Below are positions 9,916 to 64,000 of a stretch of DNA of 64,000 nucleotides, piece by piece. The position numbers and the translations under genes were made by a program. Position 1 is the first letter of the stretch. Every line of letters begins with the position of its first letter. Source of the stretch: Eutreptiella sp. 'Long Island Sound 2002' (lineage: Eukaryota > Protista > Euglenida); NCBI GenBank assembly GCA_964036045.1, contig OZ038378.1:21886001-21950000 (forward strand), written 5' to 3'. Below the pieces are notes generated by a model. That model searched no databases and had not been told where the DNA came from. It saw only the letters and a list, made by a program, of their open reading frames with translations.

Positions 9916-10029
9916 ACCTCACCTCACCTCACCTCACCTCACCTCACCTCACCTCACCTCACCTCACCTCACCTCACCTCACCTCACCTCACCTCACCTC
10001 ACCTCACCTCACCTCACCTCACCTCACCT
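9916..10029. repeat. (ACCTC)n microsatellite, ~23 copies
   Basis: Near-perfect pentanucleotide run starting just 3' of the stop codon of the minus-strand membrane-protein gene. Confidence 0.97.
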
Positions 10030-10045
10030 TCACTAAGGAACGCGC

Positions 10046-28243: not shown

Positions 28244-31200
28244 TCAGGACTGCTGCCGGTGCCAGGGCTTCGCCGCGCGGCGCTGTGTCCCGTCGGGCTG
28301 CGGCGCCCGCTTGGGAGGGCTGTGGCGCTGGCAGCAGAAGGACAGCCAGTCCACCAGAGGGAACCCCTTGGCTTTGAGGTGCAGGACCCAGAACAGCCGG
28401 ATGCCGAGGAAGCCCCAGAAATCGACGCAACCCGTGTTATTGGTGTCCGCCTGCGGGTGTGTGGATGTGGAGGCACCAGAGGCGTAGATGGGCATCGGAC
28501 TTGTGGGCCTACTCCTACACCCCCTTTATGACATGACGCCGGGCCTCTCAGAGTGCAGTAAGCGGCACGACCCCCCACCCCCCATACCCCGTACACAACG
28601 TACCAAGGGAAACAGGGGGGGTGAGGACAGGCCAGTCCGGTAGGTCAAGGGCACTGGGCGGTGAGAGCCAATGGGCACACCGCTACCAACGGAGGGAGAG
28701 GGTTCAAGGAAAGGACAAGGCTCCCCAAAGGCCCCCAAAACCTCCAAAAGTCAGTGCTCGTGACTGCCCTCCCCCCCCCCCACACGCCACGCTGCGCCAT
28801 GGCGCTGCTATGCAGACCCCAGCCAGCCCAAACGGTCTCAAGAGATACCCACCGCTCAGCGGGTGAAGGAAGTCCGGATCCGAACGTAAGGGGCTGCCTG
28901 GGCAGGTACCCATGAGTGCGGGGGTTGGGGGGGGGGGGGGCACGTGACAGTGATGGATCTAATTGGGGGGGTGGGTGTCCCTCCCTCCCCCCCCCCCCGT
29001 TTTGTGACGAGGCGTCACAATACGCGTCACAAAAAAACCCGGTCACAGCCTTTTGGGTGTCACAATATTTTCAGAAAAGCTGTTTTCCCACTATGGCCTA
29101 TTGTATTTTTTGTGACATGTCACAATTCACTACCCCCCCCCCCCCCACCCCCACCCCCTGAGTGGCGCACAAATTAGATCCATCACTGCCACGTGATGCG
29201 GCGACGCGACAGGGTGTCGCACTTGCTGTCGTGTTGTGCCACCTTTCCCCACTCGGCCGGGGGCAGCCATATCCAGTGCGCCGGTGGAGTTGGTTCAGAG
29301 ACTTGCCACCATGACACCGTACCTCCGCAGTATGGCGTGTATTGGGGGGTGGTGGGGTTGTGGCGTATATGGGGGTGCTCAGAGGTGAGTCCGAACCGTG
29401 TGTCAAACCGAGGACGCCTCTATGATATGACGTAGAGGCATTAGGGGTGCCTACAGTTTGGATTTAGATGTGAAGGGACCGCAGCCTCTGCGGGGGGGGG
29501 GGGGGGGCTGATGGCGTCGTGACGACTCTGCACAACCGGCCAGTGCCAGTGGAAGACGTATCCCAGGCAGGGCGGTCCTTAACGGGAAAAAAAAAGTGTT
29601 CCGTTACACAGTTTTCCCAAAAAAGCCCACGGGCACTCCATGTGTTCAACCATGGTTGGTGGAGGTTGGCGGTTGGTGGTTGGCGGCGATTGGCGGTTGG
29701 CAGTTGGCAACTGGCGGTTGGTGGCGGTTGGTGGTCGTTGGCGGCGGTTGGTGGTTGGTGATTGGTTGTTGGTGGCGGTTGGTAGTGGTTGGCGGTTGGT
29801 GGTTGGTCGCCGCTGGCGGTTGGCGGCGGTTGGCGATGGTTGGTGGTTGGCGGTTGGTGGCGGTTGGCGGTTGGTGGGAGTTGGCGGTTGGCAGTTGGAG
29901 GTCCCTTGGGGCGGTCCTTAAGGGCGGTGCTTAACAAAAAAAAAATCTGGTTCCTTCAGGACCACCCAGGGACCGCCCAGTGAGGGGGGGGGAGGGTGAC
30001 CAACACACTACACCGCAGGCCGTCCAGTGGTCACAGCACACACGCATGGCTGCAGCTACACCCAACTCCCGGCCTTCTGCTCGGTGTCTGTCATGTGTGG
30101 CGCTTCAGGAGCAAAGCAACAAATTGCTGGCTTGAACTCCTTGCGGCTGGCGGCTGCCGGCCAACCCCAAAAGACTTCGGTCAGTAGAGAGGGACCACCA
30201 CGTGGCCCATGCGCCATGGACCTTGGTCCGAATCCAGAGGCTTGCAGTAGCTACATGACCGGCACTGCGGCCTGCAAACACCCCTGACCACCCTAAGGTC
30301 GAGTGTTTGGGCCCACCGGTTGACACCGATGGTTGGAACACGCCGGGTCGTGCCCTGGCTTGTCTGCTGTGGTGCTCAGACATACAAGAGGAGGGGGGGG
30401 GATGATTTTGTGGGAAACTTTCGTCCTTAACGTGGCGAATTTTCCCACCCGAACACAGAAGAAAGCAGTGCAGCATGTGCGACCCGTGTCTTGCCACCCT
30501 GCACAGGATGTGGCACTGCAAACTGCTGGGGGCCCTGTTGTTGCAGGACTTGAAGTATCGGAGGAACTATTCTTCAACCCCATTTCTTGGCCTGCTTCTC
30601 GAGCACAGCATGACGACTCGTTGTCCGCGTCTGCAGAGTTTACAAGCTGCGCTAGTTTGTGCTTTGGGGTTTGCAGCGTGGCGAGCTTTTCCCCGGCGGA
30701 AGTGATCCCGCACCCCCCGTAACCCCCCCTCTGTAATCTGGGCGTACCCACTGTCACTTTAATCCATCGGCGCGGTACCTCGGGTTTACACGTCTACGAA
30801 TGGGGCAATTGTGAATAGCAGCCTCACCCTCCCCCCCCTTAACGACATTGTCAGTGTTGGCACATCTATTTTCCGTTTGAGACAAATCAACGCTCGCCAA
30901 TCGCACGACCGCAGTGCCTACAACCTGGAGTGGTACACCGCACGCCCCGACACACAACGAAAGGCAGCGACGGCCACGCCTGCGTGTCTGAAAGCACGCA
31001 GACCACTCGGCAGTCCGTACTGCATCGGAGGGGGTGCGCCCTGCGGTAGAGCAGGGGCTGGGCTGGGGCCTGCTCCCGGACCGGGACACACCTGCCGCAG
31101 CATTTTCTGCAGTTCCACATATGTCACGTCCCAGAGGCCATGTTTGAGCACCCAGTTCCCCAGTTTTGGGAGGGTCAGTATCCCGGAGGCATCCACGTCC

Positions 31201-32001: not shown

Positions 32002-33841
32002 CTGCAACCCAACGTCTGGAGGCTGGAGAACAAAAAGGCATAGGCCGGTGTGTAGAGCTGTGGTCTATCATCCATGTGACTGTATGCTCACGCGTACATG
32101 CATACAAATGACATGCATGAATGATCCGACACGTAACCATACACATATAGCCACACCACAAATAGAACACACACACACACACACACACACACAAATCACA
32201 GGTATTATCGAGGATACCGCCAGCAACCACTGCGATCCCTTTCAAGGACCCCCATCCAGGGCCTTGGGGAACTGGCAGAGGGGTGCACCAGACCCATACC
32301 CTCGGAAGGTGAGGGCGACGCTGTGGGGTCACACAAATTGCGTCCTCTGAGTGGGTGACCTGAGTCGTGCCTTTAGGAGTTCTAACACACAACCGTCCAC
32401 GGGCATGGGGGGCATAGTACCTCAACCCCCCCCCTGGAAATCTCCTCCCACTTGTCGTGACACCCCCTCCCCCCCTACGGGGGGGATTGCACCACACCAC
32501 ACAATAGTAGCATGAAAACTGCAGCAGTTCCAGTAAACCCCAAAGAAAATTTGTCTTCGGCGCCTTTGGCGCCTAGTATTTCCTATGCTCTTTGGGCCAA
32601 GTGACGCCTCCCCCCTCCCCCAGGGGGGAAAAAGGGGGGGGGGGCATCTATTATTGTCCATGACCCTGTTGCATATGGGGGCTAGTTGCAGGGTTAGGGA
32701 TCAGCAATGCCTTTCCCAGCCCCTCTCGGCCCTCCCCGTTCTGTGAGGTGCGCTAGAGGGGCCAACAAGAAGAATCGAGTCTTCTCACTAGTTCCTCTGC
32801 CGTGCTTGGAGGCCGATGTTGCCGCCATGCTGGCGTGTGCCGGACTAACCTCCTGGGCTGGTTGACCTACCGCCATGTCCCCTGCCCCCCCACGCAGCGA
32901 GGGGGGGAAAGGGGTCAGCCGCGGGTGTCCGCTGCCTCACCGTCACCGTTAGCGTAGACGGTGATGTCATCTTCCACGCCCCACCGTTGAGGTGGGACAG
33001 AGCGCGGCTGAGATGCCAATGCCGCATCGTACACGGCGGCTGCTGCCTTGTAGCCCTCACTGGCCATTATCTCATTGTCGGCTGTTGGGTCCACTACGTC
33101 GCGTCCACTCAGCGGCAGCAAGCGCCGCGTCTTGCCAATGTTGATCTAAATGCCTGATCTAGATGCCTGGCGAGAGCAAAAGCGCGGCCCCCATGCTCAA
33201 GGGGTATGGTAGGGATGCCGCTCGCATCGAAGGCGGCACCCCCTGAGTCAACACCCAATTTGGGGAATCAGTCAAAAGCATTGATACCGCAGGCAAGGCC
33301 CCTAAAAATCACCTGCAAAGGGGGGGGGGGACTTCAAGGACGGGGTAAGGTATGACCCCAGCCTCCTATCGGCGTGGGGTGAGCCCCTGGTCTCGTGTCC
33401 ACCAGCGATGAGGGGTGAGGGGCTGGAGGTTCGGTGAAAGACCCGAAACACCACAATAGCAGGGGTTGCTATTCCTCTATTGGTCAAGCGCACTGCCTCA
33501 TTGCAGTTGAAGATCATTGCAATTGAAGAGTGCGGGTACGCATTTGGACACTGCTATGGCTAACCATTGCTATACCATGGAAACACCTTTGCATAGACGG
33601 TGCGCAACACAATGAAGCTCCATTACCGGTTGCACACCAGTGTCTTCTTGCGGCTTGGGTGATGGTTCAAGGACTGTGAGCACTGCACTACTAGCTAAGC
33701 CTTCGAAGCACTCACTTGTTCCTGCTTTGCGGGTGGTGCATGTGCAACTAGTACACAATTTCCACTTTAGCAAAGTTATCCTACGCCAAGCGCCACCACC
33801 ACATATGTCTCAGGGTGCACCAATGCAGGGCCGGGACACAT

Positions 33842-33848
33842 ACACACA

Positions 33849-33904
<56 letters not shown>

Positions 33905-33908
33905 CACA
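33842..33908. repeat. (AC)n microsatellite with two interruptions
   Basis: Direct inspection. Similar tracts at 32168-32192, 42779-42810, 60741-60763 and 60847-60935, and (AG)n at ~37448-37473. Confidence 0.95.
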
Positions 33909-36900
33909 ACGAATGCAACAAACACGGCACTAGTCAAAGTGTCCTAAGTGTACTAGGTCTCGTTAGGTGCAGTGTCAAAACAAAAGCAGAAGCATGTTCC
34001 AATACGGCACTATGCGCCTTTCTGCGGTGAAGAGGGAACAGTGGGCAACAACTCTAGTCTGCGGCCGCGAGATCATTCCTTGGTGCAGCTTCCATGGTGT
34101 ACAGACAACAATGTGTCCCTACGTCACAAATAGGGTCAGATTCAACCTGCCCACTACCTCTTCACTAGAAAGACCCCGGACAAGGAATAAACCATCCATG
34201 ATCCCTAGGTTTCTCGTTCACTCCCTGTAATAGTAGTCTCACCACAGCCACAAGTGTGAGCCGGAACTCCCAAATTCACGGATTGTAGAGACGATCACTC
34301 TACCTTCACCACTCTACTTCCTGCTGCCTCGGTGTAGTCTCACAAACATTCAAAAACAACCCGTCACCGGGCCGCTACACACACAAGAGTATCGATCAGG
34401 CTTTTCCAGGAATGCACGGGAGACATCCAAGACCACTATCCGTCCCAAACACCTGTGATACCCTATACCACAATGTTAGGAGCCAGACACCAGCTACTGT
34501 ATGTGCCCTCCCACCAATCGGCATGCCCCTTGAGCCACCGGAGCAGGACAGCCGCCGCATGTGCTCTAGTCATGGGGAGGTGAAAGCTCATGTGATAGAC
34601 AGCCTTTTACGTAGCCTGGACATCATGTGGCGCCGTAGCGTACGCACAAAAAAAGGCCTTCATGCATGCCTTTATGCACAAACGCACACACACACACGTG
34701 CTATGTGATCCTCCTCTATGCACAGCAAAGCAAAGCACAGAGCAGAACATATCCCTCTGTAGCAAGCATGGTGTATGGCGCACCGTAAAATGAGAGAGTA
34801 ACAGAAATGCACAGCCCCAAGTGCAAGAAAACGGTCTCACGAAGGAGTTTAACACCGCCAGAGCGGCCGCCTCCCCATCAGTGCCTTTAGCACTGCACCC
34901 TACCCCGACTCTTCAAGTGCCTTCCACACGCCCCAATCACAGGTCTCAGCGTGCTCCACTCTCTTTTGGTCATCTGTCCCCTGTCAGTGCCCCATGCAAG
35001 AAGACAGCTGTGGCTTAGCCCAGTCATCAATCATTCACTGAAGACACCCTAGCATTGTCTCAAACACACACTGAAAAACTACTCCAAAGGGTGATGTTGC
35101 GGGTGACCCGGCTACGTACGATGACATTCATCGATGACCTTCTGGACATTTTGAGCAGAGCGAAATAGTGTGTGTGTGGAAACTTTTCCTACAGGTTGCA
35201 TATGTGGGACAATGGCTCACGACGCCTGTGGCACGGAGATTGGTCTGGACCTCCTCAACATTTTGACCATCCTTGCGGCAGGGGGGGGGGGGGGCAGTGT
35301 ATGGACCGCAGCTGAGCACAACCCCTGCCTTGTAAGTCCCATGGCAAGGTGGATGCGGAATGGGCAGAAATGGAGACAACGAAGTTGAGAGAAGTAAGAG
35401 GGAGCAGCGACGAAGAAGGGCAACGAGATGAAGCAACAGAGCGGAGTAGAACAGATGGTGGTGAGGCAAGATGAAATATGGGAGGACAGTAGCGAACACA
35501 GATTTATAATTTTCATCATCAGCCAATCGCCTGTTGCTGTTGCTCTTTCATCCTTGCACCGCTATTCTGTTGTTTCTACCGCTCGTTGGCCAGCATTGCT
35601 ACTGCCATACTGTGGTTGCAAACTCTACAGATATGCCTAACGTTTCTGTTTTGCTATCTACTCCCCACTATACCAATGACAATACCGATGAAAATCGACA
35701 TAGCTGTCTTGTATGCCTCAGCAGCATACAGCCCTACCGCAATCATTGCAATACCCTGGAAATCACGGTGTCAACAAGCAACAAGGGTAAAGCCTCATGG
35801 GACAAAGATTTCTGTGCATTGGGTTGCGCACTTCTGCAGAGGAGTTTCCCATCCACATTCAGCTGGAAGCACAGCACCCCAGATGGCCGCCCACAAAAGG
35901 CCCTACAAGGGCTGGCTTGATTCCAATGTTCTGTCCATTTCACTAGAAATCCTGATGCATTGCGGAAATGATGAATTCCCAGGGTTAGGGAGTGCTGTTC
36001 CAGACAAAAATGCAAATGCATTTGCCCATTCCAATAAAACTTCCTCACAATTACTCCAATTTACGCATTCGCGATTGAATTACTCACTTGGAGAAAAGGA
36101 GCAACCAGATCAGCCTCAAATAGCTTGTGCATCACTGATCCTTTCCAACAACGTCTTCAAATGTTTTTGCGTTTGTCCTGGTTTGCTCGCGATTATGCAG
36201 ACTGTGATGATGCTATGGGTGTTCTTACCCAATGATGTTTCGAGGCTGCCCTTGGAGCTGGTACCCCTGAATCACAATTTTCTTCGCGGCCTCTGACGCT
36301 CAACTGCCAATGTCTTTGCTGTTGTTTGCAGTTGAGATCTGTTTGGCAAACAGGTTGACCACAATGCTCGCTCCCCATGGTGCACGCGGTATCCCCAACT
36401 ACCTCCGTTATCCCAATCCCCGCCCTGTATCGGAGAAGAAATCCCAATGTATCGGTGCAATGTATCAGCAAGCTCATTTTTGGCCAAAAGGCTTGCCCTT
36501 TGTCCATACTCGCCTCGTGCTCATTCATAGGCCTGGTTGTTGTGCAATTAGGACCATTTGCAAACCCTGAGAACTTTGAGCTCTTTTTTGGTCAATGATA
36601 CTGGAACCGCTCCTCCAAGGTGGCTGAAAAGGGAAGCCAGGCACCCGGAATGTGAAACTGCTGTCTTGAGATGCCATGTCCCAAGATGTCATGTTCCCAC
36701 TGTGCTCCCACCTGCCTGCCTGAGCCTGCCGTCCATGAGCTGAGCCTGCATTTTGCGCATCTTCACGGCCAACTCCTTCTTGCGGCACAGAACAAGAACA
36801 AACAGGGAGGGCTCCAGCCCAAAACCCTCTCCAACCCCCTGCACTCTTGGCTCCATGGCCCAGTGCCATGTGCACTGGTTGAAACCACCACAGTGCAATC

Positions 36901-42180: not shown

Positions 42181-42774
42181 CTGGCAAGACAGGGGGGTGA
42201 CAAACAGGGATTTAAGGTGCGTGAACCGATGGAGGGATGGTGTAACAGATGGATGGACAGGCCATCACAATGGAAAGCAACCCCCGTGAGTTTTGCTTTC
42301 GAGGGGGACATCTTTCAATTCACCGGTATACACATTAAAGATACATACGCACAATCTTACGAGGTTTGTACCCCCAAACCCATGTTAACTGTCCTCAAAT
42401 AGCACCTTAGAGTTCTTTGTTGTTGGTCTGTGCAGAGCTGTCTCTCACTTCTGGTGTATTCTCTTTTGCAATTATCCTCTTTGTGAGTATCCGCTTCCTT
42501 CCAGCAGCACAATCTTCCCCAGTGGGTGCCACTTGTAGCAAAATGTATTTGTGGCAACATCTCTGCAATAAATGGTTCTATTAAAAATCCCCTCCTCTAT
42601 GAACAGTGTGTTTCGGGTTGGGTTGGGTTGGACGCAATCTGAAGTGATTCCTGTCACCTCAACGGAAAAGATGTCCTATCACACATTGCAGGCCACCCTC
42701 CATTGAGCTCAGCGCTGCAGACCACTGTCAACCCTGTCTGAACCATGCACACATGCACACATACACAGACCCAG

Positions 42775-42811
<37 letters not shown>

Positions 42812-43240
42812 GAAGGAAGCCAGCATGCAGAGACGCACTAAATCCCCAGGCACCACCCACCAGCATTTGGCCAGACGCCACTTGTGGACAGCAGGGGGTG
42901 ATTGGTGCAGCCGTGGCCCACACGCCTGGATGACCCCAAGGCTACCTCACCTTCCAGTCATTAGGTGAGGCGGTGAGAGTCCATAGTGTCATCGCCATGG
43001 ATTTACTTAGCCCTAATGGACCATTTAGCACCGCTGCACACAAGACAGGGAGGAGGAGATGGGATGGAGAACCACTCTTCGCGCATATCTTTGTAGCAGC
43101 ATTGGCTCTAAACATGCTTTGAAAGTGTCTGTTTATCATTGTGCACGTCACAATATCAGAACAAATGGGTTTTGGAACTCGATTGTTGAGCAGAGGAGGC
43201 TAACAAGTACTGAAGCATTTCTCGTTCTTTTTTTCCACTA

Positions 43241-49549: not shown

Positions 49550-52500
49550 TTCTACAACTTTTTTTCACAAATTTTCGTATTTTTGAAGGGGCCCCACCAC
49601 AACAAAACCCGCAATTGTACGAAATAGGCCCCCACCCCAACCCCACCCCTACCCCTATGCCTAATACAGATTTGTTTCTTTTTCACAAAGATATAACAAG
49701 CCGTTGATCATGCTATGTGCTACTGATTTTGTTCATTTGACCAGTGTCATGGTGGACGGCAACAACATCTACTGAGAACTGCGGGGGGTTACCAAAGAGG
49801 ATGAACAGTTGATCTGCCATCTCTTCTTGGGTGGCCGGTATGGTTTTGGTGTGCAGTGCTGCAAACAGCACATTCTCATAGACACAGACACAACGCAACG
49901 CATCACCAACCATGTTCCCAAGCAAGGTGTGACGCCAATAGGTAGTATTAATATGTGTTCGCAAACAAACTACGGTGCAACGTTGCCGGTTATTGATATG
50001 CTTCGCTTTGTTTTCACACATTTCCTTCTATCTGTAACATACTGCAAGTCCCACCCTTTGAACATGCCAACACCGTATATCGGCAACAACAAGAAGATAA
50101 CCGTGCACTTGATGGGCGATAATAATAATGCTGATGGTGTGTACAGCAGCCCATGTAAGGAAGAATGCATGCATGTATACCACACATATGGTGGCGCTAA
50201 CTGTTTGTTTCTACACACACACTAAACCCGCCCCAAACAAATATGAATCCATTGCCATGGCAAGCCAATTTATACTTCAAGGAGACCAACCTCCTGCCAT
50301 AATACTTATGAATATATGGTTCAAAAAACGCATGTCGAATCACACCGTTTGTATTATCCAATATGACTCCAAAAACCAGATCGTCATTCCCATCTTACCA
50401 TGCCAATATCACGGCGCTCAATCGGATTTGTGGTTGCGTCACATGTTCAGATGGAAAGATTTGAAGAATACATATCCATCGTTGAAAGCAGTTTGCCTGC
50501 TACTACTCAGTAATCCGCGAGGCGTGTGACCCCCATGTTCTAATCCTCTCATCTCAGGATTGGATTTCATTGAGATCCATGGAGCCAAGAATTATCCATT
50601 CCTAAACAGCTCCTGCGGCTGCCTTTGCTTTTGCTCGAAATTAGTCTTGATATGGATGCATTTGTATGCACCTCTAAGGCAACAGCCCACAGTAAGCTCA
50701 CAAATGTATACGAGGCACCAAGACACCGCTTCGTTCCCGTCAAACGGGGACTGAACCTAATGCAGTGGATACCAAACATCGTGCAATCATTATGGACTGA
50801 CAAATGGTATGTGTGCCTGTAGGAGATGGAGTGCTTCTGCACATAGGCAAAGGCCACCTTACAGATGTGCACCTTGCCTTGTGCCACTACATGACCGCCG
50901 TTGCCTTTCCCGCTTGCCTTTCCGGTGCACTTGCATTTTGCAGATGGTTTTTGATCATGGTATAGGTGTCGGCTACGCAGAACGCACCACCACTGTGACA
51001 TTGACAAGAGTGCCTCCATACAGTCTTGGACTTTGTAGTTTGACTCGTTGTACAAGAAAAAGTGGCTCTAATATGCAGAGTCTGGGAAAATCGTGTACCA
51101 CCGTGCAAGCATCTGGATTGCAGTCTGCTCCTGAAATGTTTCCAAGAGTTCGGATCCCGTCTTAATGCCTAAGCCGTTCCACCTGAAAACATACACTGCA
51201 AAGCACGTGATACACTGGGTACATACGACACAGCTCTGTTATGTGACATTGCAGTTGAGCTACTGATTAAAGACCAAGGCTACAACTACATTACTCCATG
51301 GCGGACAAAGGCAGTAGGGCGTGGGGTGGAGGGGAGTAGGGCTCAGCACCCTGCCTGTCCTCTGGCAACCTTCGGTAAATTCCTCTGCCTACCATGTTCG
51401 TGCGTGCAGGTGCAGGTTCTGATGTGCTCTCCAACCACCGTGGGCAGTCAGATCTTACCCTGGACCCCAGACAATCGATACCCAGAGGCGCTGCTCAAGA
51501 GAGGAGCGACCATCTGAGGGCACCCATGCCACACCAGAATACACAGGCCTCCTTCAGAATAAGACCCAGCTGAAATGAAATGCGCAGCGCCGCTAAGCAT
51601 TGAACGTCAAAAGTTTGGAAGGTTCACTCCACAAGCTGCAATAAGCCATCCCATGCTGTGACTGGTCTATCTTTCTTGATGTGTTTGCTCTCTGGGCCTG
51701 GACCTATAACCACGGGAAACCAAGAAAAAGGGCCCACCAATTCTGAGGTGCCAGACCCCGACCCACCCAACCCACTTTCTTAGCCCACGCAAACTGCACC
51801 CTGTTTTGCGCATCAAACGCGCAGAGAAGGACTGGTTCACAACAGTGCAAAAAAACTATTTTTTTGGATATTTGATAAACGTGTTTTTGGGCATTGTGAA
51901 ATAAATTGTTTTTTAGGCATTACGCAACTCCGTGTTCCGAAATGGGACGTTTTTTATATTTTATGGTGCTCTGAGTGCGCGAGGCCTCGCGCACCCGAGA
52001 TATTCGAGGTAGAGTTTACTAGGAAACCATAAAAACCGCAAGGACTGGAGGTTGTGTAAGTACACAGCTTTCACACGTTATTAAAACTCACGTTGTATTG
52101 ACGAAGGAGCATTGAAAGTGTATGACGGCCAGACTTCCCATGTTCGGTGAAACACATACACTCTACAATAAAAATAAAATACAAATTTAGGCATCCGGAG
52201 TGCGCGAGACCTCGCGCACTCTGATCACGTTATGTAATGGTTTACGGGGTGGATATGACGCGTAAGACTGCAGGTGCAGTACCATACTGACAAGCACATT
52301 TGATTTTTGCGGTGTAGGTGTGTGTAGACACAGTGTTGGTCACGTATGACATGGTACACAACATTGTCCAACGGAAACAATCAGTGCGCGAGGCCTCGCG
52401 CACTCAAACCACACAAGGAAATGAAAAAGCGGGCAGGTCAGGCTACGCCGGCATTTACATTCCCTTTCAAGGCTACCACTTGTGACTGTCGATTATACAT

Positions 52501-52870
52501 CGGTAACCTTCGTCGTATCCGTCATGGGGGTCAGGGGAATGATTTTCTTTTTTCCAACAGCCACTCAATGGGAGACGTGTCCAATTTTAATGGCGGCCGT
52601 AGCCTTCGCTGCCCGAAGGATAGGGTTTTTTTTTTCAACTGGGATTAAGGAAGAAAACGGAACAGGAGATTGTGGTTGGAAAAACGGTTTTCGGTTACTG
52701 GCAACGGAGCGCACGCAGACACCAAATACAAATTGCGACGGCAGCGTGCGCACTAATAATGACGACAGGAAAAGGCCAGCTGTTTTCAAACACGCTGTTT
52801 TTAAAGAACGCTGTGCAAAACGATAATTAAAATATGTGAGCAAATTCAATTTCACACAGAAATACGCAGA

Positions 52871-54697
52871 ATGCCGCTTCGCGCCAGAAAATCAGTAACG
52901 CATCGAATGATTGCAGAAGTAAGCAAAGGAGCAGCAACACTAAGAGAGGCATGCGTTGTAGAACAAGCATACCAAACAGATGACGACTTGTGGAACGGAC
53001 TGAAACGAAACGACCTGGCGGCGCAACTGGTGTTAACATTTGCACAGCGACTCAGGTTCAACAAAAGAACGCGACACAGTTTACCAGCAGCTAAAAGGCA
53101 GGAGGACAAGCGTTGGGTGCGCATTTTGCGACAAGAGGGCTGGAACCTGTACCTGTTGATGCGTCAACGGGCAGTACCAAACAGAAAAAAACCGGGAAAC
53201 ACGACAAGGTACCTAACACAAACAGAAAGACGAACGAAAGTACGACTTGGGCAAGCAGACGCCTGCGCAGATACAGTGGACGAATAGGCGGCAGCAGCAC
53301 TTAAAGCAACGTGGACACTGGTGCTTGCATCGTGTTGCGTGCTGTGGATCGACAACTGGTACCGGGCACAATACACGACACACCCAGACGAAAGTGACCG
53401 GTCGCAAAACTGTACTGCAATGGCAGTACTTCAACTAAAGCAGAGACCAACGTACTGGGCAGGACACCCAGCCATTGAGGACCTGGCAGCACGCATAACG
53501 ACAGTCGCACGGGCTATGCAACAGCGCGAAAGGAGAATCCACCAGACTCTGCGTGACATGGGATATGTGGATGGTTGTGTACCAGATACCGGAAATGTGA
53601 GAGCACCGTTGGATGTGTGGAGGGATACAACGACCGTGCAGGCACCGGTGTGGCGCCTGTTTGCCCTGTCGAAAGAAAAGGTCACCTGCGGTGTCGGTCT
53701 GTTAAACTTGTTGCAGTTTGCGAAGGACACAGCACAACAAACAAACAGGGTTTTGCCGCTGTTGGTTGACGAAAACATACACTACAGGATACTAAAACTG
53801 TTGTATGGGGCAAAGAACCAACGATGGAACATGCGTGCCTAACTCCGGTACGTACCTGTAGTTTACGGTGTTTGGCACGCCTACAAGTTTGTTGTTACAC
53901 CGACTTTTCGGGTGTTCTGGCCCATTCTAACTTACCTACGGAAAGGCCTGCTACGCCCGGGTTCAACCATACTATCATACCCAAAACTGATAGTTATGGA
54001 AAAAACTATTGCTGCGCTTATGCTTGCCACAACCAGGATACTACGCCCGTTTCGTCGCAAGGCACAGGCTGCAACTGCAATCAGTGGTCGTGACACGGCG
54101 CATGCCAACAGGGCAGCAGTGGCAAACGGAGTGTTGTGTTTGTTGTCGGAATGGTGCCCGTTGTTGTTGTACCTGGGTCACCTGGTACGGGAGTGCACCT
54201 GGGCGGGGGAAAATAACAGTACGGGGTCGCGGGCCGAGGAGGTGTTGCAGTTGAGTTTGTGTCTATTGCAGAGGTTGCGACGCGGACCGTGTGACACCGT
54301 TCTGAAGTACGAACGCACCATCATGTGCACATTGCTGTACAACAGCAAGTGGCACTAGGACCTGCCCGGTCAGGCACACTCAGAGGAGTTTGGTGAGGGG
54401 ATGTTGAGCAAGCTGGTGCGCGAGGAGGCAAAAAACACCGGTTCTGTTACTGTTGAGGAGGTGGAAAACCATTACCTGTTACTACAAGTTGGTCCAGGTG
54501 GCAAACGCGTGGGTGTGCAAAACGTTCCCAAGAACCTGGTACTTGGTCACTGCGTGCTGGATGCCCTCATTGACCAAAAGACAAACCCCACAAACCAACT
54601 GAAACGGAAACTGGATGCTGCTGTGGGGAGGAGGACAGACATGGATGCCGACAGACAGGAAGCAGCAACGCGCAACGTGCGCCAACGCGTGCGGTAA
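52871..54697 (+). pseudogene. DDE transposase-like protein with RAG1/Transib-like motif order, disrupted by three in-frame stops
   Basis: ORFs 52871, 53321, 53912 and 54401 are all in one frame, separated by single stops: TAG 53285, TAA 53840, TAG 54356. About 608 codons in total. Motifs in order: LWIDNW (D at 53351), LLVDENIH (D at 53768), GVWHAYK (53867-53887), HSEEFGEG (54377-54400). Superfamily assignment is by motif memory only. Confidence 0.6.
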
Positions 54698-54946
54698 CTG
54701 ACACCCGCAGTGCGCGAGGCCTCGCGCACTAAAGGACACGAGAAACGGGTCTGTAATGCGATGTGAGTGCGCGAGACCTCGCGCACTGAGTAGATCGCTA
54801 AGTCCCGTGGAATTGGTCGCAGCAAAGGCGGTTGTGTAACAGATTTGCGAAAACAAGTGGCAAAATGGCGTTTCGACTGAATTCAGAGCCCAAATGACCG
54901 TGTTTCGTGTCATGCCATCTGCCCTTTTTAGGTATTTTTTGGCACC

Positions 54947-57902
54947 ATGAGTCAACCAGGGTCGCCAAAACGTAGACCACCAGACGCAGCGGCCGTGGAG
55001 TCATCACCAGGAACCGACCAAGGGGACACGCCGAAGAAAGGGCGCAAGAAGAAGGGGGATAAGAAGCCGATACCGGAGATGAAGCTCACAGTTGACATTC
55101 AACAGTGGCTGCGGAAGGAGAATGGAAAAGCAGTGAAGACAAAGATTCTTGATTTGAAGATTGACAAGACCAAGGAGCGGGGACAGATCCGAGCCATCAA
55201 CCACGACGACGTTGGCAAAAAAGTGGCGGGATACCAAGCGTTGCCGCCACCCGGACCGTTGCGCGTAACCGCATGGGAGGACAGTGGTATGACTCGCTTC
55301 GCATTTTTGCATAAGGTCGACAACATTTCTTCTCCCTGTTGTGCTGTGGTACATGATTTGCGTTGCAGATGGCTCGCTTTACGTTCTGAATGGGCAACAC
55401 GGGACAGAAACATGCAGGGCGATTCAGGACATGCGGCTCGCAGAAGGCAAAGAACTGGAGGACTGGCAAGAATATTGCTATGTTGACATTCTCAAGTACG
55501 AAACGCCTTGGAGGATCCGGGCCAAGGTTGCAAGATTACAGCAAGCTGGCAGCCAGTCTATGACGTGGATTCCGCTGTCCGATGCGCTAGACAACATGTT
55601 GTTGTACATTGAGGACCATAAGCGGGAAAAGGAACCACAGGATTTCGAACGGTTCAAAACTGCTGTTGTCCAGGTTGCCGTCAACTCTGCGTTTCTTGCC
55701 CCCGAGCAGTTGGAAGAACCAGGGCACACAGTATGTGTTGGTGCCTCACACGGTCGCAGTGCGCAAGGTCTCGCGCATTCTATGGCACGGTTTTCCTTCG
55801 TAGGACGCGACATTCAAGCACTGGAGGGACATCACCTCCTTGGCATACTACTGCGGCCACGACGCGGTTACTGGTATGAGGAACCTCGAGGGTAAGAGCA
55901 GGAAAGAGGACGTCACAAAGAATGCCTTCAAGAAGCTGGAGGGGCTGCATCTGCCAAGTTTATTGCAGAAGGTCTGCGCGCATATGAACCTGAAGGATGC
56001 GACCATACGCAGTACCCAGGCCCACATTGACGCGTTGATTACGGAACAATGGGTTACTTTCCACCTTGACCATCCGGACAATAAGTATTTCGTCAACCAA
56101 ACCGCAGGTAGGCGTCGGTTTCGCAGCGTCAGTGCGCGAGGGCTCGTGCACTCTCCCGCCTTTTCCACATCTACACAGCTGCCGATGCGAAGATCCGAGC
56201 AGAAGTCGCAGCACTGGGCACGTCGCAACTGAAGATTGGCCTCGGAAACTGGGGTTATTGGGAAGACGCAAAAAGTTTGAAGTACCGGTCGCCGTGGCCA
56301 AAGTGGAAAACGTTGACCGGTGCACCTCTGTGGCGGACTGGGGACAAGGGAGCACCTCCGTCACCGCAGACCCTGTCCGTGCGGAAACAACTGCAAAGGA
56401 AGGCTGAGGCACCAGCATCGGCGCCGGCGACACAGACACAGTTGAGTACTGGCGAAGTGATCAATGTCTCCAAGCAGGACGACCAAGGGACCAAGTGCAC
56501 TTTGACAGCATGCCGTATTGAGGATATCGAAGATACACCACCGGCCCGTTTCCGGGACTTGCAGTACCCGTTGTGGGTTGTCAACGCTGACCTTTTCGTG
56601 GAATATGACTCTGCAGGATTCGTTCCTACGTGGTTGTTCGATGTGATGATGTTGGGTAAGGATCTCATTTTCTATGGCGACACTGATGTGGTGTACCGTA
56701 TTGGCCGAGACATTCAGAGGCTCTGGCGTATCGAGAAGGAGAATGATCCAACTACAGTGCCTTTCTATCATGCCCAGTTGCCGGTATACTCTTGGATGTC
56801 GGGTTCCGTCACAACCAACATGTATCAGTTTGACGAGCACACCATGTGGATTGGAACAACGAGTCGCTGGGATAAGCAGGTATATCTGCCGCTTTCGCCG
56901 TTTTTGACGCCGTTGAGTGCACGAGGCCTCGCGCACTGCTGTCTCAGTTATTCGTCTGTATTCATCGCATTTGCAGTTGCCCAACTATGTGACGTATTCC
57001 GCTGGAGATTTCGAAGAGATGCAGAACAAGAACCTCGGTGGCTTCATGCCTCTGATTCACGTGCTGTGGTACCTTGACAAGTATCTGGTAGATTGTGGGA
57101 ATGCTGATGCAGTGGTTGTTGTGGATGAGACGCCGGCCATGGCCGCAAAGATTACGATGTCGGACGGGAGGACTAAAGTGGCGTTTCTGGCTGTGTCAGC
57201 GATCAAGCAAAAGGACCTTAGCAATGCCGTTGGAGGTGCTCTGCAGCATGCCATCATCATGCGGTACATGTTGGAAGACGATCAGACGGAGCAGGGAGCG
57301 ACAACTGCAACTTGGGATACTCAAGAAGAGTGGCTTCTGCGTGGCATTCCACTCTGGGTTTTGGACAGCAACCGAGGTCACGAAGGGCACCAAAAGGTGC
57401 ATGCTGCTGAAGCCGCCCAAGAACAGATCGTGACTGAGGCACCCGTTGACGAGAGTGAGTCCACTGCGCCTAAGCCTGCACCTATCCTGCCCAAGCTGAA
57501 GAAGACTGCCCAAGTTGTACCAACTCGGGGTACTGCAGCCGGAAAAGGAACCCCCTCGGGTAGCAAGAAGCAGGCAAAAGAAAAAGGAAAAGAATCGGAC
57601 AAGCCGGAAGAATCAAACAATGACGATGGCGACGAGATGATCCCGAGCAAGTACTGGAGCCACAGCGCAAGCGGAAGCGGGCGCCCGCCTCTCACTTTGA
57701 TGCAAGTCCCGATGATTCGGGTAAGGACCAGCCAAAGTTGAAAGCGAAGACTGCTGCAAGTGCTAGTGCAGAGTTCAAGCCGCCATCGCGTTCTGGTGCT
57801 CAGCCATCCCGTGGTACCGTTACCTCCCCAAGTGGGGGAAGTTCGGTGGCAAGGAGCCTGAATTCCAGGTTGGCTAAGGTTGCAGGACCGAAGAAGAAGT
57901 AG
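54947..57902 (+). pseudogene. Five-exon gene (~875 aa) with N-terminal ParB/Srx-like domain and basic NLS-like ends; one frameshift near 57635
   Basis: Exons 54947-55286, 55369-55730, 55804-56107, 56179-56879, 56977-57902. Four short GT-AG introns (82, 73, 71, 97 nt) with matching phases. The spliced GQIRAIN...PLRVTAWEDSDGSLYVLNGQHG resembles the ParB-type R...P.....y.v.dGxHR pattern. A frame change near 57635 recovers DDPEQVLEPQRKRKR...PKKK*. Confidence 0.7.
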
Positions 57903-60900
57903 GTCACGATTAACCCAGGTGTTTTTCTCTTTTTTTGCAGTCATGTGTGCGCGAGGTCTCGCGCACTCGCCTTCGACGCGAATGCATTTATATGTCCTTA
58001 AGGGCTTGTACATTTTTGCCGAGCTTTTATTTCAGAGTTTGCATGTAGTGCATTTCGTGTCGTGTTTTCGTTGCCTTCTGTACACAATTGTTTCCACGAC
58101 CTTGAGTGCGCGAGGCCTCGCGCACTGAGGGACAGAAAAAAGTAATTTATTTCGCAGGACAAACTTTGGTACAACTGGAGTTCCACAGAATTTCATTTTT
58201 GAAAATGAGCTTCTGAAAAGGCACGTGCTTGTGGGATTTTGAAATACAAAAACAACAACATTGGTAATACGCACCCTTCAAATCAATCAAAATAATAATT
58301 TATTTTGGTAAAGAAAATCTTAAAAAAAGCAGCAACTTGCGGAAAAAACAATTTTTTTGGTGATGTCTGATTCATGCGTGCTGCAAATGTCCAAAAAGAA
58401 TAGTTTTTTTGGTTGCCATTTTTTGTGTCCGCCCCTTCCAAAAGGGGGTGCAGTTTGCGTGGGCTAAGACTTTATGGAGCCAATTGTCAGTGAATGTGGT
58501 GTTGCTCATGTCTAATGGTGTTTGCTTTGTACTTGGAGGTTGGTTTTCATAGGGCATTTCTTTTGTTGCATCCGTCACAGTTGCATGCACAGAAATGCAG
58601 CAGCAAATTGCGACCGCTCGCCCAACAATGACTACAACAGCATCGGGGTTCTAAGTCTTTCTTGAAAATCCATGAAGACAAAAGGACAGCAGCTTAAGTC
58701 ATGCATGCCAGGGGTGGATATAGTGGGGGGGGCGTCCCCCCCAAGCCCCCCCCCCCCCCGATGACGATTACCATTACGATTTACCCGTGACTGAACTAGC
58801 AATTTTGCCAGCAGTTTCACAAGAGGACTGATGGCCAGAAAAAGCGCCAGAGCAGGATTTGAACGCAAGGCAGTCAATTCGTGAGCCTAGGCATATACCG
58901 CTGTACTACTGAGCCATCCTTCCAGCCCTCAACACCAGACAATACATTGCACAGGGGTTGGTGTATCCCATGACGACAGTCCACACAGTGCAATCATTTC
59001 TTGACACATTTTGCCAAAATGGCTTGCAATTCCGAATCATCTGTGCCTGAACTGCCTGAGCTAATCGTAATTGCAATCATTCCGTCATCACTGCCTCCTG
59101 GCTCAACAGCCCCCCCCCCCACCCCACCCCAACCTTGGTAATGTCGTCACAATCATATCCACCCCTGATGCATGCAATTGCAGCTCCCAGAGGACCCCAT
59201 GAGGACCCCATGAATGCGCTGCATTCCCATGTATGCTGCCAAGCCCAGAGGTGCAGCTTACGTAGAGGGATTAGACCATCCTACACCAGTTGTACTACGC
59301 CGTACCACCAGCCTTCATGGAACCCCGCGCCCCACCACAATGCAGTGTCCACGAGAACCCGCAGGAGCCTCCTCACCACCTTACTAACACCCTGACTAAA
59401 AGAGGGGCGTGCCCAGCCACAAGCCGCCATGCTCCAGGGCACGAACTTGCAATCAGTACACAGCCATGCAGAGTGTGGGCAGGCACACCAGTGTCCACTT
59501 CTCCGCTGGTAAAATGCGCATCCCCCGAAGGAGGTCCTGCTCATTCTCCAGGGCACACAGTTTGCCAACGGCTACATCGATAGCCCATTGGGTGGCAGGG
59601 AACCGCTCTGACCCACAGCGTAGTGACTTGTTGAGCGGCACATACGCTGGTCCAGTGTAGAGACGCAGCCCTGAAAATGTACGCATGGATGTTTGTGTAT
59701 ACAAGCTGCGAGTACACAAGGGTTGCATGAAGGGTCAGGGAGCGAGAGGCACTCCCACACACGGCCCCACAGAGTTTGGTGCAACGGAAGGACGAGGGGG
59801 CAAGCACAGGGCCGTGAAGCTGCCGGACAAAAGCTAGGACAGACCCAGATTACAATGTGAAGATTGCAGCTAGTACGACAGTTTTTTCCATTGTGGTACA
59901 ATTGTATACACTTGTTTGTGTCCTTTTGGCTGCCGTTTTCTGCCAAAACAGGGCAAATGTGCAAATTGATCTTTGACACCATCACACCATCAATGTGAAC
60001 ACTACGGCCCTGGCTTGACGTGCAAAGTGTGGAAAGGATCCCAGCCCAGCCTGCGATCTGCCCTGCAATGTGATTGGCATGAGGAAATGACATGCACAAC
60101 TGTTCATTCACTATCAGACCATGAACTCACCCCAGACGTGGCATGCACAGGCACATGCACATGCACCAACCAAACCAAAGGCAAAATCTCAGGACAAGCA
60201 TATGTGCTGGCACATGTGGAGACATGGCAAGCATCTCATACCAACTACTTCAGCTGCAGTGAGTCCCACAGCCTTGGCCAATTCAGTATTCATGAATGTC
60301 TCTGTTGTCCAGCCTTCGTGCCCTATAACATATGCAAAAAGAAAAAAAGCAATGAGTATGTAAGAGCCCCCATCACAACTGAGGGGTGAAGAGTCACAAT
60401 GGAGCGCTGAATGAACATTGGACATAAAAAAATGGGGAGGGAATGCGGAATGGTGTACACTTCAGTAGCGTGTCTCATTGTTGAGAAGACCCAATTGTTT
60501 CAGCATGGCTGCAATCCTCGCCCGGCTTGTGAGTCCAGAAGGGGCATGGGCACCTGTGGAAAGCAAAAGCAATCCAAATAAGTCTGAGAACCGTCCTCTG
60601 TTTGCAAATTTGGCCTCCATCGGGCTTCACATGGACCACTACTTCGTTGTGCCCCAGCCAATTACCCTCAAATAAACCAAAGACCCCCAGCACACCCAAC
60701 TGCCACCCAAGCTCCTGAAACACCTGCGGTGTGTTCTGGGTGTGTGTGTGTGTGTGTGTGTGTATGTGACGCCCAAATATTTCAACCAAATCAATAGCGT
60801 TTGCTATAAACATCACCACTCTACAGCTCTGTCCGCACTGCAGCAATGTGTGAGTGTGTGTGTGTGTGCGTGTGTGTGCGTGTGCGGGGGTGCGTGTGCG

Positions 60901-61306
60901 TGTGCGTGTGCGTGTGCGCGTGTGCGTGTGTGTGTGCTCTGCTGTACTATGTATGAAGGCAGCTGCCTATTAAGGTCCTGGACGCTCGTGTGCAGGGTGG
61001 GGAGGGGGGTTAGCGGATTAGGACTCGTTGACTGCCTGCACTACCCTCCCCCGCCTGCCCCGTGGTTCGTGGCGTGGCGGAAGGACCAGGGCCTCCCGGT
61101 CAAGTCGCCTCACCAGACGCCCTCCCCTGCACCCTAGCTGCTGCCATCCCCCCTGGGTACCTGCACTTTCCCCAAATTCAGTGGGAAAATCAGACAGCCC
61201 CCCCCCCCCCCCGGTCTCGTATTGACGCAATCCCCTGGGTGCCACTGGTGAAGACTGGGGCCAGACTGGGGCTGGGGCTGGGGCAGGGGCTGGGGCAAGT
61301 GCAGAC

Positions 61307-63549
61307 CTTGGTCGCGCACATCGAAGCCCCCCTTGGGGTTGGGATACTTGCGGCCCTCTTCATCCAGTGGCACCGGTTGCGTGGCGTAGCTCCAGAAGTC
61401 TGCGCCTTGAAACTCCGTGGAGCACCACTCCGCCTCCATTCTGCTCATCAGCCATGTGCTGGAGGGGGGCATGGGCTCTTGCGAGTCCTCCAGCATGCGT
61501 TTGAAGGCGGGGCGCCAGGAGGTCAGCTTGATGGCCTACCAGACACAAGGAGCAAAGAAATGTGGGAAAGGGCTGGGCCTGGGCTGTTCCGGGATCATCC
61601 CCTGTCGTTTGGGGCCTCAGTGAGCTGGAGCTGACCCTCATCCGTCCAGTAACCACCCATCAAATGCAAACCCCGCAGGAGGGGGCGTCGGGGTAAAGCC
61701 TGATTCAGGTGAGATACTGAAGGTGTAGGTGGGACCTTTGGTGGGCTTCCCATCACACAGCCACCTCCCAAGAGCTACATTGCACCCACTCAAAGGCAAA
61801 TAAGTTCAAAAGGAGTGGGAAGGAGGAATGTGGAGACACTGTACACACGTTGTGGACACTGTACACATGTAGACACCGTACACATGTTGTGGACACTCGG
61901 GACCAAGGTGCATGTTGTGGACATGCACATGGAGGACACTCTACGCATGTTGCCCACACTGCGCACATGCTGCCGACATCGTGTAGATGCAGACACTGCA
62001 CACACATTGTGGACACTATGCTCATGGTGTGGACACTGTAGACAACTGCACTGCCAAAACGCACTGTCAGAGCGAGAACCTACTGCATATCTGCTTTTCG
62101 ACCTGTTGTCTGCACACAGCACGGCATCAAGAAAGTGGTGCGGGTGACCAAGCCGCCCACAGCCCTTGACGGGACAAAAGACACCATGCATTACGGCGTG
62201 GCCGTCAAGGCCCAGGAGAGGGGGTGGAGGGGATCAGACACCAAAACCCCAGACACCGTTCTGGGCCATAACAGAAAGCAACTTGTGCGTTTCACGTGTA
62301 TGCACTCCGTCACAAGCTTTATCACAACAGTGCCGCATGAGGCATAGCACTGTGGGGCATGGCCCAAGGTACTCGATCGACCCTACCACACGCCTCACCA
62401 GCAGAATTAAGAGAAGCGTGCTGCCTACCCCCCACCCCCTCCCCAGCAGCCAGCCCCAGCGAAGATTGTGGCTTGTGGACGGGTGGTGAGGCACAACATG
62501 AATCGTGTTAGAACAGAAAACTTTTTGGCACCGGGTCGTCCCATTCCACCTCTAACAAGAGTGGGGGGGGGGGGGGGCAGACCTGGAGATAGTGCGTATC
62601 GCCGCTAACGCGAGATACACAGATACCCACTTTTTTTGTGCGATACACAAACGACACACACTTCAGAAGCCTGGGACACATGCGTGTAACATGAAATCCA
62701 CGAAGAGAGAAAAGAGATCTTGGCCACCCCCCCACAGGTAACATGTCACCATCACTGTACCAAATTTTGCAAATCGCATTCATGATGAGACGACTGACAT
62801 GTGGAAAAACACACACACAGGGAATTGAACACATACTCCCTGGTTCACCAAACGCCTGCCTCAATAACTGAACAACAACTACCAGCTTGCAGATCAGTGC
62901 AACAGAGCGTTCTTAGCTTGAAGTGATGTCCAGACAAAGCGCAAATCCAGCGCAATCCAGCATCGACTGCCCAAAAATCCACCGCAAAGTAGACAGCTGG
63001 GTGGGACACACATGTGATACACACTCTTGACAGTTGGGATACACAAATGATACACACCCCCGAAGCTTGGGATACAGTGTGACACAGAAATGTCAGTTTG
63101 TGGCATACACTCTATCTCCAGGACTGGTGGGGGTGGGGGGGGGGGGGCTGCCCCGTGCCCCACAGCCCCGCAACAGACGACACAACAACAGTGGCCGCCC
63201 CAATGTCTGCCCCCAAGCCCTGACCGCAACAGAGCAAGTCAACCGAGGCCCAAAATGCACCGAGCAGCCTGTGCGCTGTATTGCTTCAGCTACTTGTTCA
63301 AGCTCTGATCACTGCATGATGATGATACTGCCGCAGCATCACCCACGTCCAGCGCATGTACATACCATCGGGTCATCCCCAACCCCATGGGCACCCACTT
63401 CGCAAACCTGCAGTAGATTGAGGTAATCCAAATGGGTGGGTCGTGCATTGTCATTTCCGTCCTCGGCAGCTGCGAAGGTGCGCATCTGCACATGATGCGG
63501 CGACGGGTACAGCATCCCTTCATGCCGAAGTGGCACAGGCGGGATGTGG
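61307..63549 (-). CDS. Hypothetical protein, partial; candidate exons 63549-63408 and 61535-~61307
   Basis: Phase-0 join ...RPTHLDYLNLLQ|AIKLTSWRPAFKRMLEDSQEP...DFWSYATQPVPLDE with CAG|GT and TAG|GCC junctions. The downstream donor is ambiguous (61307 or 61161). Confidence 0.45.
61835..62045. repeat. ~20-bp degenerate minisatellite (GGACACTGTACACATGTTGT)
   Basis: GACACT/GACACC recurs at 61835, 61855, 61872, 61892 and onward, with divergent copies to ~62045. Confidence 0.8.
62578..63126. mobile_element. 549-bp hAT-like MITE
   Basis: cagacctggagatag (from 62578) versus ctatctccaggactg (to 63126), 14/15 inverted match. Repeated subterminal GATACAC/GACACA motifs. TSD probably gtgggggg/gtgggggt but is obscured by G runs. 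Confidence 0.7.
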
Positions 63550-64000
63550 CTTGAACACAGACATCAAGATCAGGCCCTTGGTGAGCCCACAAGAGCAGAA
63601 GGGCGGGAGGGGGGTCATCTGGCGCCTTGGTTGGGTGTCCTGTCCCCGCACTCACCCGCAACCCCTCCTCCTGTGACCCAATCATCAACCGCCCCATCCC
63701 CCTTTCCTGGGGGGCAGTGTACCTGTGCACCTCTGACCCAACTTGGCTGTAGTTCAGAGGAACGATGCGAAAAGCTACAGCAGACACTTCACATGCCGCA
63801 TTTCACTGCCCGCCAAGCCCCAGCCAACCCCACCCCAGGGAAGGGGGAAGGCAGGGAGTTCCTTCAACTCACTAAAGGGCTCCTCACACCCAGAAGAAAG
63901 CTTGGCTGTTAGCCATCATTCAGAGGAGAAGAATGACAGAAAAAATGGAAGGGCTACAGTAAATTGTCTGGCACCACCCCATATAATGGAGGAAACTGTT

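Follow-up and report, generated by a model that had tools for sequence, protein, structure and literature searches.

A decayed copy of a two-gene cut-and-paste transposon family in Eutreptiella, with a private array of dyad sites probably read by an element-encoded protein

The 64,000-nucleotide stretch of the genome of the euglenid Eutreptiella sp. 'Long Island Sound 2002' analysed here (contig OZ038378.1 of assembly GCA_964036045.1, positions 21,886,001 to 21,950,000 of the forward strand; hereafter the window) carries at positions 51779-58468 a copy of a class II DNA transposon, bounded by terminal inverted repeats (TIRs) and moving as one unit by cut-and-paste. This copy is a decayed member of a family, autonomous and recently active, whose elements measure about 6.86 kb and carry two co-oriented genes, named gene 1 (putative transposase) and gene 2. 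Its non-coding parts hold an array of dyad sites private to the element which, on comparison of copies and related lineages, is probably read by the gene 2 protein. The best reading of the group is that of a new compact, recently active two-gene DNA transposon group whose transposase is unclassifiable and possibly related to Transib.

Limits, mobility and age of the transposon

When pieces of the two genes were used as protein queries, more than 149 and more than 182 related open reading frame (ORF) fragments came up. These were found on megabase contigs of one ENA assembly only (ERZ25074135), in which the family comprises hundreds of copies, and 15 loci with copies of the window family were taken from it for comparison. 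Eight of the copies measure 6850-6860 bp and are identical in structure.

In every copy having the end concerned, homology between copies starts at window position 51778/51779 and stops at 58468/58469. The terminal 23-mer of the TIR, CTTAGCCCACGCAAACTGCACCC, is found without a single mismatch in each of these copies and the interiors diverge by about 15%; the TIRs measure 23-30 bp. Perfect 5-bp target site duplications (TSDs) surround all 12 complete copies (ACTTT at the window copy), with a different sequence each time. Two filled/empty paralogous pairs contain a single 5-mer at the empty site, exactly at the positions where the TIRs start and end. These empty-site controls could be obtained because two copies had inserted in the same repeat, of which an uninterrupted paralogue was present at another locus. 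The two insertions lie at different points of that repeat (L003:3553-5328 and L008:6409-6808), which itself encodes an ORF of about 590 aa with a weak match to DUF1759.

The definition of ends and TSDs from filled versus empty sites bears out mobility, and the co-mobilisation of the two genes between one pair of termini, as proposed in the original prediction, held in all 12 complete copies. The inverted repeats which that prediction took for the termini do exist, and the left one is present in the master copy too, but they are subterminal (Table 1); since the true ends lie further out, its coordinates miss 70 bp at the left end and 57 bp at the right.

L009 and L015, two different loci, hold copies with 100% identity over 6859 bp, and one intact gene 1 protein is encoded on 35 contigs and another on 12. 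The activity of the family is therefore very recent. Identity between the window copy and the master copies amounts to 85.8%. The prediction of two co-oriented genes was correct, gene 1 being here one frame with three stops and gene 2 consisting of five GT-AG exons. Comparing the window copy with the master copy gives a ratio of nonsynonymous to synonymous substitution rates (dN/dS) of 0.11 in gene 1 and 0.26 in gene 2, which indicates that both genes were kept by purifying selection in the element lineage. A reassigned genetic code with TAA and TAG as sense codons was considered for the stops of gene 1 and rejected: intact copies read Q, Y and Q at these positions, and gene 2 is free of in-frame TAA and TAG. 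One old copy carries a 425-bp internal inversion in gene 1 (L002:9015-9439, equivalent to window 53925-54349).

Dyad sites in the element and in its relatives

The 22-bp palindrome AGTGCGCGAGGCCTCGCGCACT has ten matches with 0-3 mismatches between 51974 and 58126, for 0 expected from shuffled sequences. All ten sites are orthologous in every full copy, and seven are perfect in the master copies. The prediction of ten conserved palindromes confined to the element was borne out, none being found elsewhere in the window; outside the element group, the palindrome was absent from about 230 kb, made up of the other ~57 kb of the window and ~170 kb of flanks of the 15 loci. On this sample, the site belongs to the family and is not a genome-wide miniature inverted-repeat transposable element (MITE). 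The 22-mer was likewise absent from JGI metagenomes, IMG/VR and GTDB genomes.

Three related lineages (L016, L017 and L018) and a gene-less relative of 1.7 kb carry equivalent arrays. L018 (7200-11094) belongs to a second, deeply diverged family of the same genome, with a gene 2 protein 25-31% identical to that of the window family; gene 1 is almost wholly missing in that copy, a fragment being left upstream of gene 2. The core TGCGCGAGGCCTCGCGCA is the same there as in the window family and occurs as an intergenic pair, in introns 1, 2 and 4, and twice downstream. L017, a contig from a sediment metagenome, has a gene 1 with 38% identity to an intact copy in tblastn (43% for the protein cluster in the database search). 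Its sites, TTARCGCGAC-N-CCTCGCGSTAA (GCGCGA-N4-TCGCGC), lie upstream of gene 1 (four) and just past its stop (three). Paired sites are spaced by 57 bp in the window, 56 bp in L009, 55 bp in L018 and 58 bp in L017.

A further array belongs to L016, a 7.3-kb metagenome scaffold which starts with a related TIR (TTAGGCGGGCCAAACTGCACC) and has a gene 1 of 30% identity. Its downstream co-oriented gene aligns by its N-terminus with gene 2, including YVLDGQHKFAAA, and has an intron at the same place. L016 has a motif of its own, CACGTGAYTGCGTG, with 13 copies versus 0.24 expected, distributed over the subterminal regions, intron 1 of the gene 2 homologue and the stretch just after exon 2 of the latter. 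The gene-less and intron-less relative is a 1693-bp insertion nested in the 3' part of one copy (L006:10904-12596). It has a perfect 23-nt TIR of related sequence (CTTAGGCGGCTCAAGTTGCATGG), the TSD ACAAG and four perfect cores (GCGCGAGGCCTCGCGC), and what looked like the one exception to the absence of sites from the flanks of the loci (at L006) lies inside it. The site array as a whole is made of an element-private motif, at the same positions in all copies, that changes by lineage.

Three of the four introns of gene 2 hold one palindrome each, as would be the case if the palindrome were an independent mini-MITE or introner that had landed ten times and created these introns. This origin is extremely improbable: besides the absence of copies outside the element group, no TSD-like flanks were seen around the individual 22-mers, all copies, and a family with proteins about 30% identical, have the sites at orthologous positions, and the position of intron 1 is common with L016, which has a different motif there.

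The 22-mer folds stably (free energy dG of -11.1 kcal/mol, z = -5.2), and a longer structure is possible for the intergenic pair. Sites are placed 12 nt and 43 nt past the stop codons of the two genes and midway through introns 2-4, where nucleic-acid hairpins could act as 3'-end or terminator stem-loops, splicing aids or small-RNA precursors. Such a role for the palindromes is nevertheless unlikely, because the L016 motif, though distributed likewise, lacks hairpin potential (z = -0.27), three of the sites are located upstream of gene 1, four are kept by the gene-less, intron-less relative, and intron 1 of the window family splices without a site. Since hairpin potential is present in the 22-mer and missing from the L016 motif, the conserved property is a repeated recognition sequence and not a secondary structure. 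On these alignments, the array is a putative recognition sequence repeated in all non-coding parts of the element, rather than a mini-element with a mobility of its own.

Families A and B have the internal motif in common and differ in their TIRs, and L016 has a similar TIR with a different motif; because TIR and internal motif change independently between lineages, two separate DNA-recognition modules are suggested. This independence fits less well with the possibility that the palindromes are sites of the gene 1 transposase itself (subterminal repeats together with enhancer-like internal ones), gene 2 then acting elsewhere, for example in chromatin or nuclear import. Five of the ten sites are indeed subterminal, the gene-less relative keeps four, as would be expected of cis-requirements of a transposase, and a helical region predicted at residues ~20-100 of gene 1 could be a DNA-binding domain. 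Conversely, half of the sites lie far from the ends, within introns or between the genes, which is unusual for transposase sites, and gene 2 is kept in three lineages (window family, L016 and L018), with the N-terminal module as its conserved part. Assigning the sites to the transposase is thus possible, though rather doubtful, and gene 2 is the more probable source of their reader.

The two proteins and a proposed mechanism

Intact versions of gene 1 encode 653-665 aa and have no introns. The homologues have in common the motifs LW(I/L)DN(W/L)Y, R-x-PLD, LPLLVDENIHY and GVWHAYK and the helix motif EE-x-GE-x-LS, and LWIDNWY, LPLLVDENIHY, GVWHAYK and SEEFGEG are among the conserved stretches of gene 1. 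Four acidic residues are invariant in the alignment (D161, D248, D300 and E377), and the conserved positions appear compatible with a DDE transposase. Gene 1 pieces, intact homologues and distant lineages gave no match in Pfam, NCBIfam, PADLOC and PHROGs at relaxed thresholds, and none was obtained against PDB chains by sequence or by profile (E <= 10). The Pfam RAG1 model did not match any of five diverse family members at E <= 1, remoter homology being beyond the reach of HMMER, and no relatives were returned by the gene 1 profile in JGI metagenomes and IMG/VR. The AlphaFold model, built on a shallow alignment, was unusable (predicted local distance difference test, pLDDT, of 46.5), residues ~20-100 being moderately confident and helical. 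Foldseek with this low-confidence model returned noise (nothing at E <= 0.001, best E = 1.7). The segments LLVDENIHY and SEEFGEGxLSK presumably resemble the regions of RAG1 around D708 and E962, which is a lead rather than a test. The enzyme had been announced as RAG/Transib-like; with no Pfam or PDB match to RAG1 or Transib and a TIR that does not start with CAC, this assignment is left unconfirmed, without being refuted. In all four lineages the TIR starts with CTTAGCC or CTTAGGC.

Intact gene 2 encodes 881 aa in five exons separated by GT-AG introns, and is intact in all young copies. Its N-terminal module is found in three lineages with the succession G(Q/E)IR, PPxGP(L/I) and (N/D/S)GQH and a shared intron position. 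The last motif reads YVLNGQHG in the window family, YVLDGQHK in L016 and CVSGQHS in L018, G-Q-H being kept. This order of motifs, which can be written GQIR ... PPxGP ... Y-x-L-[NDS]-GQH, resembles, at the level of the primary sequence, the ParB/Srx/DndB pattern, minus its defining arginine. Profiles of ParB type (ParBc, DndB, DUF262 and others) in Pfam, NCBIfam and PADLOC did not match gene 2 of any lineage, and there was no match of the N-terminus by sequence or profile against the PDB, of any gene 2 piece or homologue against Pfam, NCBIfam, PADLOC or PHROGs at relaxed thresholds, or, by tblastn of the N-terminal module against phage genomes, to anything relevant. The N-terminal alignment compared with ParB of phage P1 by hhalign gave a probability of 0.3%, which is a weak test as the template was a single sequence. 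The AlphaFold model of the N-terminus (mean pLDDT 37) was unusable, its alignment being shallow; this alignment also included a 23-aa stretch read through intron 1. The label "ParB-like" given to gene 2 at the outset is accordingly neither confirmed nor refuted by these searches and the motif comparison.

Downstream of this module, exons 3-5 and their relatives had no match in Pfam, and the exon 4 profile had none in the PDB; neither search detected a 2-oxoglutarate (2OG) oxygenase or N6/N4 DNA-methylase domain in the C-terminal part. An exon 4 HMMER search of 1.84 billion representative proteins yielded fragments of the element group only, with no annotated full-length relative. A degenerate beta-class DNA methylase (with NADLF as motif IV and VVVVDETP as motif I) was considered and discarded, NADLF being variable among homologues and profile support lacking.

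The presence of introns in gene 2 and not in gene 1, and the failure to detect a transposon-related domain in gene 2, are features expected of a captured host gene that is of no use to the element and travels as a passenger in the manner of Pack-type elements. This is very unlikely in view of the dN/dS of gene 2 within the element lineage, its integrity in all young copies, and the recurrence of the gene order and the N-terminal module in L016 and L018; moreover, the homologues found are all element copies, with no single-copy host paralogue among the 1.84 billion representative proteins.

Several points weigh against a gene 2 protein that reads the dyad sites. The arginine of ParB GxxR and DndB DGQHR is replaced by G, K or S, and the C-terminal two thirds of gene 2 have no detectable conservation in L016. 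The fold or family of the two proteins is confirmed by no tool, and the evidence, drawn from sequences, is comparative throughout. Subterminal repeats are, besides, often bound by the transposase itself.

With a gene 2 reader, which we consider probable, the element could work as follows. The gene 1 product (~660 aa) would be a DDE-type transposase recognising the TIRs, and the dyad sites would be duplex-DNA binding sites of a dimeric protein encoded by the element, most probably that of gene 2 by analogy with TnpA, VANC and PAG3. Binding along the whole element would let the protein recognise its own family only. Once bound, it could help to join the ends for transposition, as does TnpA of En/Spm; alternatively or additionally, it could shield the copies from silencing by the host, as does VANC in VANDAL. 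A more specific version is tentative, and we hold it possible at most: an unclassified eukaryotic transposon group (CTTAG termini, 5-bp TSDs, transposase matching no family of the libraries searched) whose ParB/Srx-derived protein would load on dyad sites, including those in its own introns, in a self-recognition of ParB-parS kind serving end synapsis or a shield against CpG methylation.

The observed/expected ratio of CpG is 0.57 in host DNA (window 1-51778 and 58469-64000; GpC control 1.01), versus 0.95 in the window copy of the transposon and 0.92 in the master copy. CpG positions of the element show transitions 2.2 times as often as its other positions. These values suggest CpG methylation in the host, with an element that is largely spared the decay this brings about. 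An element that is not CpG-depleted in a CpG-depleted genome fits protection from methylation, as a weak hint.

Table 1. Features of the transposon copy and its target site (window coordinates; a dot in the strand column marks features listed without orientation)
Feature	Position	Strand	Remarks or basis
Left TSD copy ACTTT	51774..51778	.	5-bp rule as in 12/12 complete copies and two empty paralogous sites
Left TIR	51779..51808	+	30-nt inverted-repeat pair; first 23 nt = CTTAGCCCACGCAAACTGCACCC
Subterminal inverted repeat, left	51849..51875	+	"left terminus" of the original prediction; present in master copy too
Palindrome 1	51974..51995	.	5' non-coding region
Palindrome 2	52199..52220	.	5' non-coding region
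Palindrome 3	52383..52404	.	5' non-coding region
Gene 1, putative transposase, pseudogene here	52871..54697	+	single frame, three in-frame stops
Gene 1 in-frame stops	53285-53287 TAG; 53840-53842 TAA; 54356-54358 TAG	+	intact copies: Q, Y, Q
Gene 1 171-bp in-frame deletion	near 54542	+	comparison with master copy
Palindrome 4	54709..54730	.	12 nt past gene 1 stop; first of intergenic pair
Palindrome 5	54766..54787	.	second of intergenic pair, 57 bp from palindrome 4
Gene 2 exon 1	54947..55286	+	basic N-terminus and first half of candidate ParB/Srx-like domain
Gene 2 exon 2	55369..55730	+	YVLNGQHG motif; second half of candidate ParB/Srx-like domain
Palindrome 6	55758..55779	.	intron 2; 3 mismatches in window copy
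Gene 2 exon 3	55804..56107	+	
Palindrome 7	56131..56152	.	intron 3
Gene 2 exon 4	56179..56879	+	conserved domain, no assignable fold
Palindrome 8	56916..56937	.	intron 4
Gene 2 exon 5	56977..57902	+	original stop TAG 57900-57902
Gene 2 16-bp frameshifting deletion, C-terminal tail	near 57640	+	premature TGA 57739-57741 in window copy
Palindrome 9	57946..57967	.	3' non-coding, 43 nt past gene 2 stop
Palindrome 10	58105..58126	.	3' non-coding region
Subterminal inverted repeat, right	58385..58411	-	"right terminus" of the original prediction; sequence
Right TIR	58439..58468	-	30-nt inverted-repeat pair
Right TSD copy ACTTT	58469..58473	.	sequence

Relation to known systems and surroundings of the element

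The original prediction knew of no described eukaryotic transposon with this combination, a statement that is outdated (10.1101/2025.02.11.637652; PMC12477816, for algal ParB-like proteins with repeat arrays; PMC5735166, for VANC): element-encoded proteins marking their own transposon are already known from algae and plants, and it is the present version that is new. PAG3 is an accessory protein of red-algal Plavaka elements, which in other red algae also accompanies Zisupton, Mutator and Fanzor-encoding elements (Petroll et al., 10.1101/2025.02.11.637652). It combines an N-terminal ParB-like domain (detected by HHpred only, E = 0.29) with a 2OG-oxygenase domain; tandem inverted-repeat arrays adjoin its gene, and its authors propose that PAG3 binds and modifies its own transposon (10.1101/2025.02.11.637652). 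Sola1-1_Ec32 of Ectocarpus encodes a protein with ParB-like and DNA-methylase parts (PMC12477816), and fusions of a helix-turn-helix of ParB type to a methylase occur in chlorophytes and chytrids (PMC4738411).

Compared by description, the window element is like PAG3 elements and Sola1-1_Ec32 in having a second protein with a ParB-resembling N-terminus and element-borne inverted-repeat arrays, and the ParB-like domain of PAG3, like the candidate one of gene 2, is missed by ordinary domain searches. It differs from them in several respects. Those elements belong to recognised superfamilies (EnSpm/Plavaka, Sola1, Mutator-like elements (MULE) and Zisupton), whereas the window element has an unclassifiable transposase and a 5-bp TSD. 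Several of these elements are giant (21.5 kb for Sola1-1_Ec32), as against 6.9 kb for the window family. Their proteins have recognisable C-terminal domains (2OG oxygenase, N6/N4 methylase), of which gene 2 has none. Repeats of PAG3 type are tandem and beside the gene, while the sites of the window element are single, dispersed and present in introns.

For VANC, the anti-silencing protein of the Arabidopsis element VANDAL21, binding to motifs in its own non-coding regions has been demonstrated, and motif and protein co-evolve between related families (PMC5735166). The distribution of sites is the same in the window element, and motif turnover is lineage-specific in its group too. The VANC protein is unrelated, however, and the transposase there is of the MULE superfamily with a 9-bp TSD; VANC motifs have spread by the formation of tandem repeats, and the window element has ten fixed single sites.

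Transib/RAG elements include two-gene versions (ProtoRAG, TransibSU), and their TIRs begin with a CAC(A/T)RTG heptamer. The window element resembles them by its 5-bp TSD, its TIRs, its cut-and-paste copies, a similar protein size and acidic positions of D...D...E type. On the other side, gene 1 matches neither Pfam RAG1 nor the PDB chains of RAG1, ProtoRAG or Transib, the TIR starts with CTTAG instead of the CAC heptamer and has no asymmetry of 12/23 type, the TSDs of the window family are AT-rich, and the partner gene is not RAG2-like. Because the transposase matches no profile or solved structure searched, the family may add a branch to the classification of DNA transposons, possibly near Transib/RAG.

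A helper protein that binds repeated subterminal motifs and is needed together with the transposase is known from En/Spm (TnpA, 12-bp subterminal motifs) and from PIF/Harbinger (Myb-like protein). As in these systems, where it is DNA-binding, a second protein is encoded by the window element, and non-autonomous derivatives keep the motifs. The protein families differ, the TSD is 3 bp in both systems and 5 bp here, and their motifs are at the ends only, whereas those of the window element are also in introns and between the genes.

With bacterial ParB-parS the element shares palindromic sites of 16-22 bp, several per replicon, with a specificity private to each replicon. It lacks a ParA partner, the CTP-binding (cytidine triphosphate) arginine of GxxR is not conserved in gene 2, and gene 2 has no similarity by hidden Markov model or hhalign. 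The sites of the window lie moreover in an integrated eukaryotic transposon, for which a role in segregation is not obvious.

Should the dyad sites indeed be bound by the second protein, the family, compact and recently active as it is, would offer a tractable model of a transposon that marks its own DNA. Its 6.9 kb, its identical copies and a gene-less relative with sites would make it far more convenient to work with than the giant elements of algae (15-30 kb in Ectocarpus) for which ParB-like accessory proteins have been reported. As comparative evidence of selection acting on internal cis-sites, the sites in introns and the pairs at 55-58 bp, across lineages with proteins 30-40% identical, are unusually clear.

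Some 240 bp past the right end of the element, long poly-C and poly-G runs and a tRNA-like stretch near 58850-58925 that was not called by ARAGORN lie between the arms of a perfect 13-nt inverted repeat (58709-59167; CAGGGGTGGATAT / ATATCCACCCCTG, 433 nt apart); the whole may be an insertion similar to a short interspersed nuclear element (SINE) or a MITE. Eight long ORFs elsewhere in the window contained no Pfam domain. An isolated fragment of eukaryotic large subunit (LSU) rRNA was found at 17230-17550 (59 bits, model positions 958-1388), far from an rDNA context. Micro- and minisatellites are present at 9896-10060, 29645-29923, 33811-33948 and 42724-42857, and consist of (ACCTC)n, an array of GGTTGGC type and two (CA)n runs.

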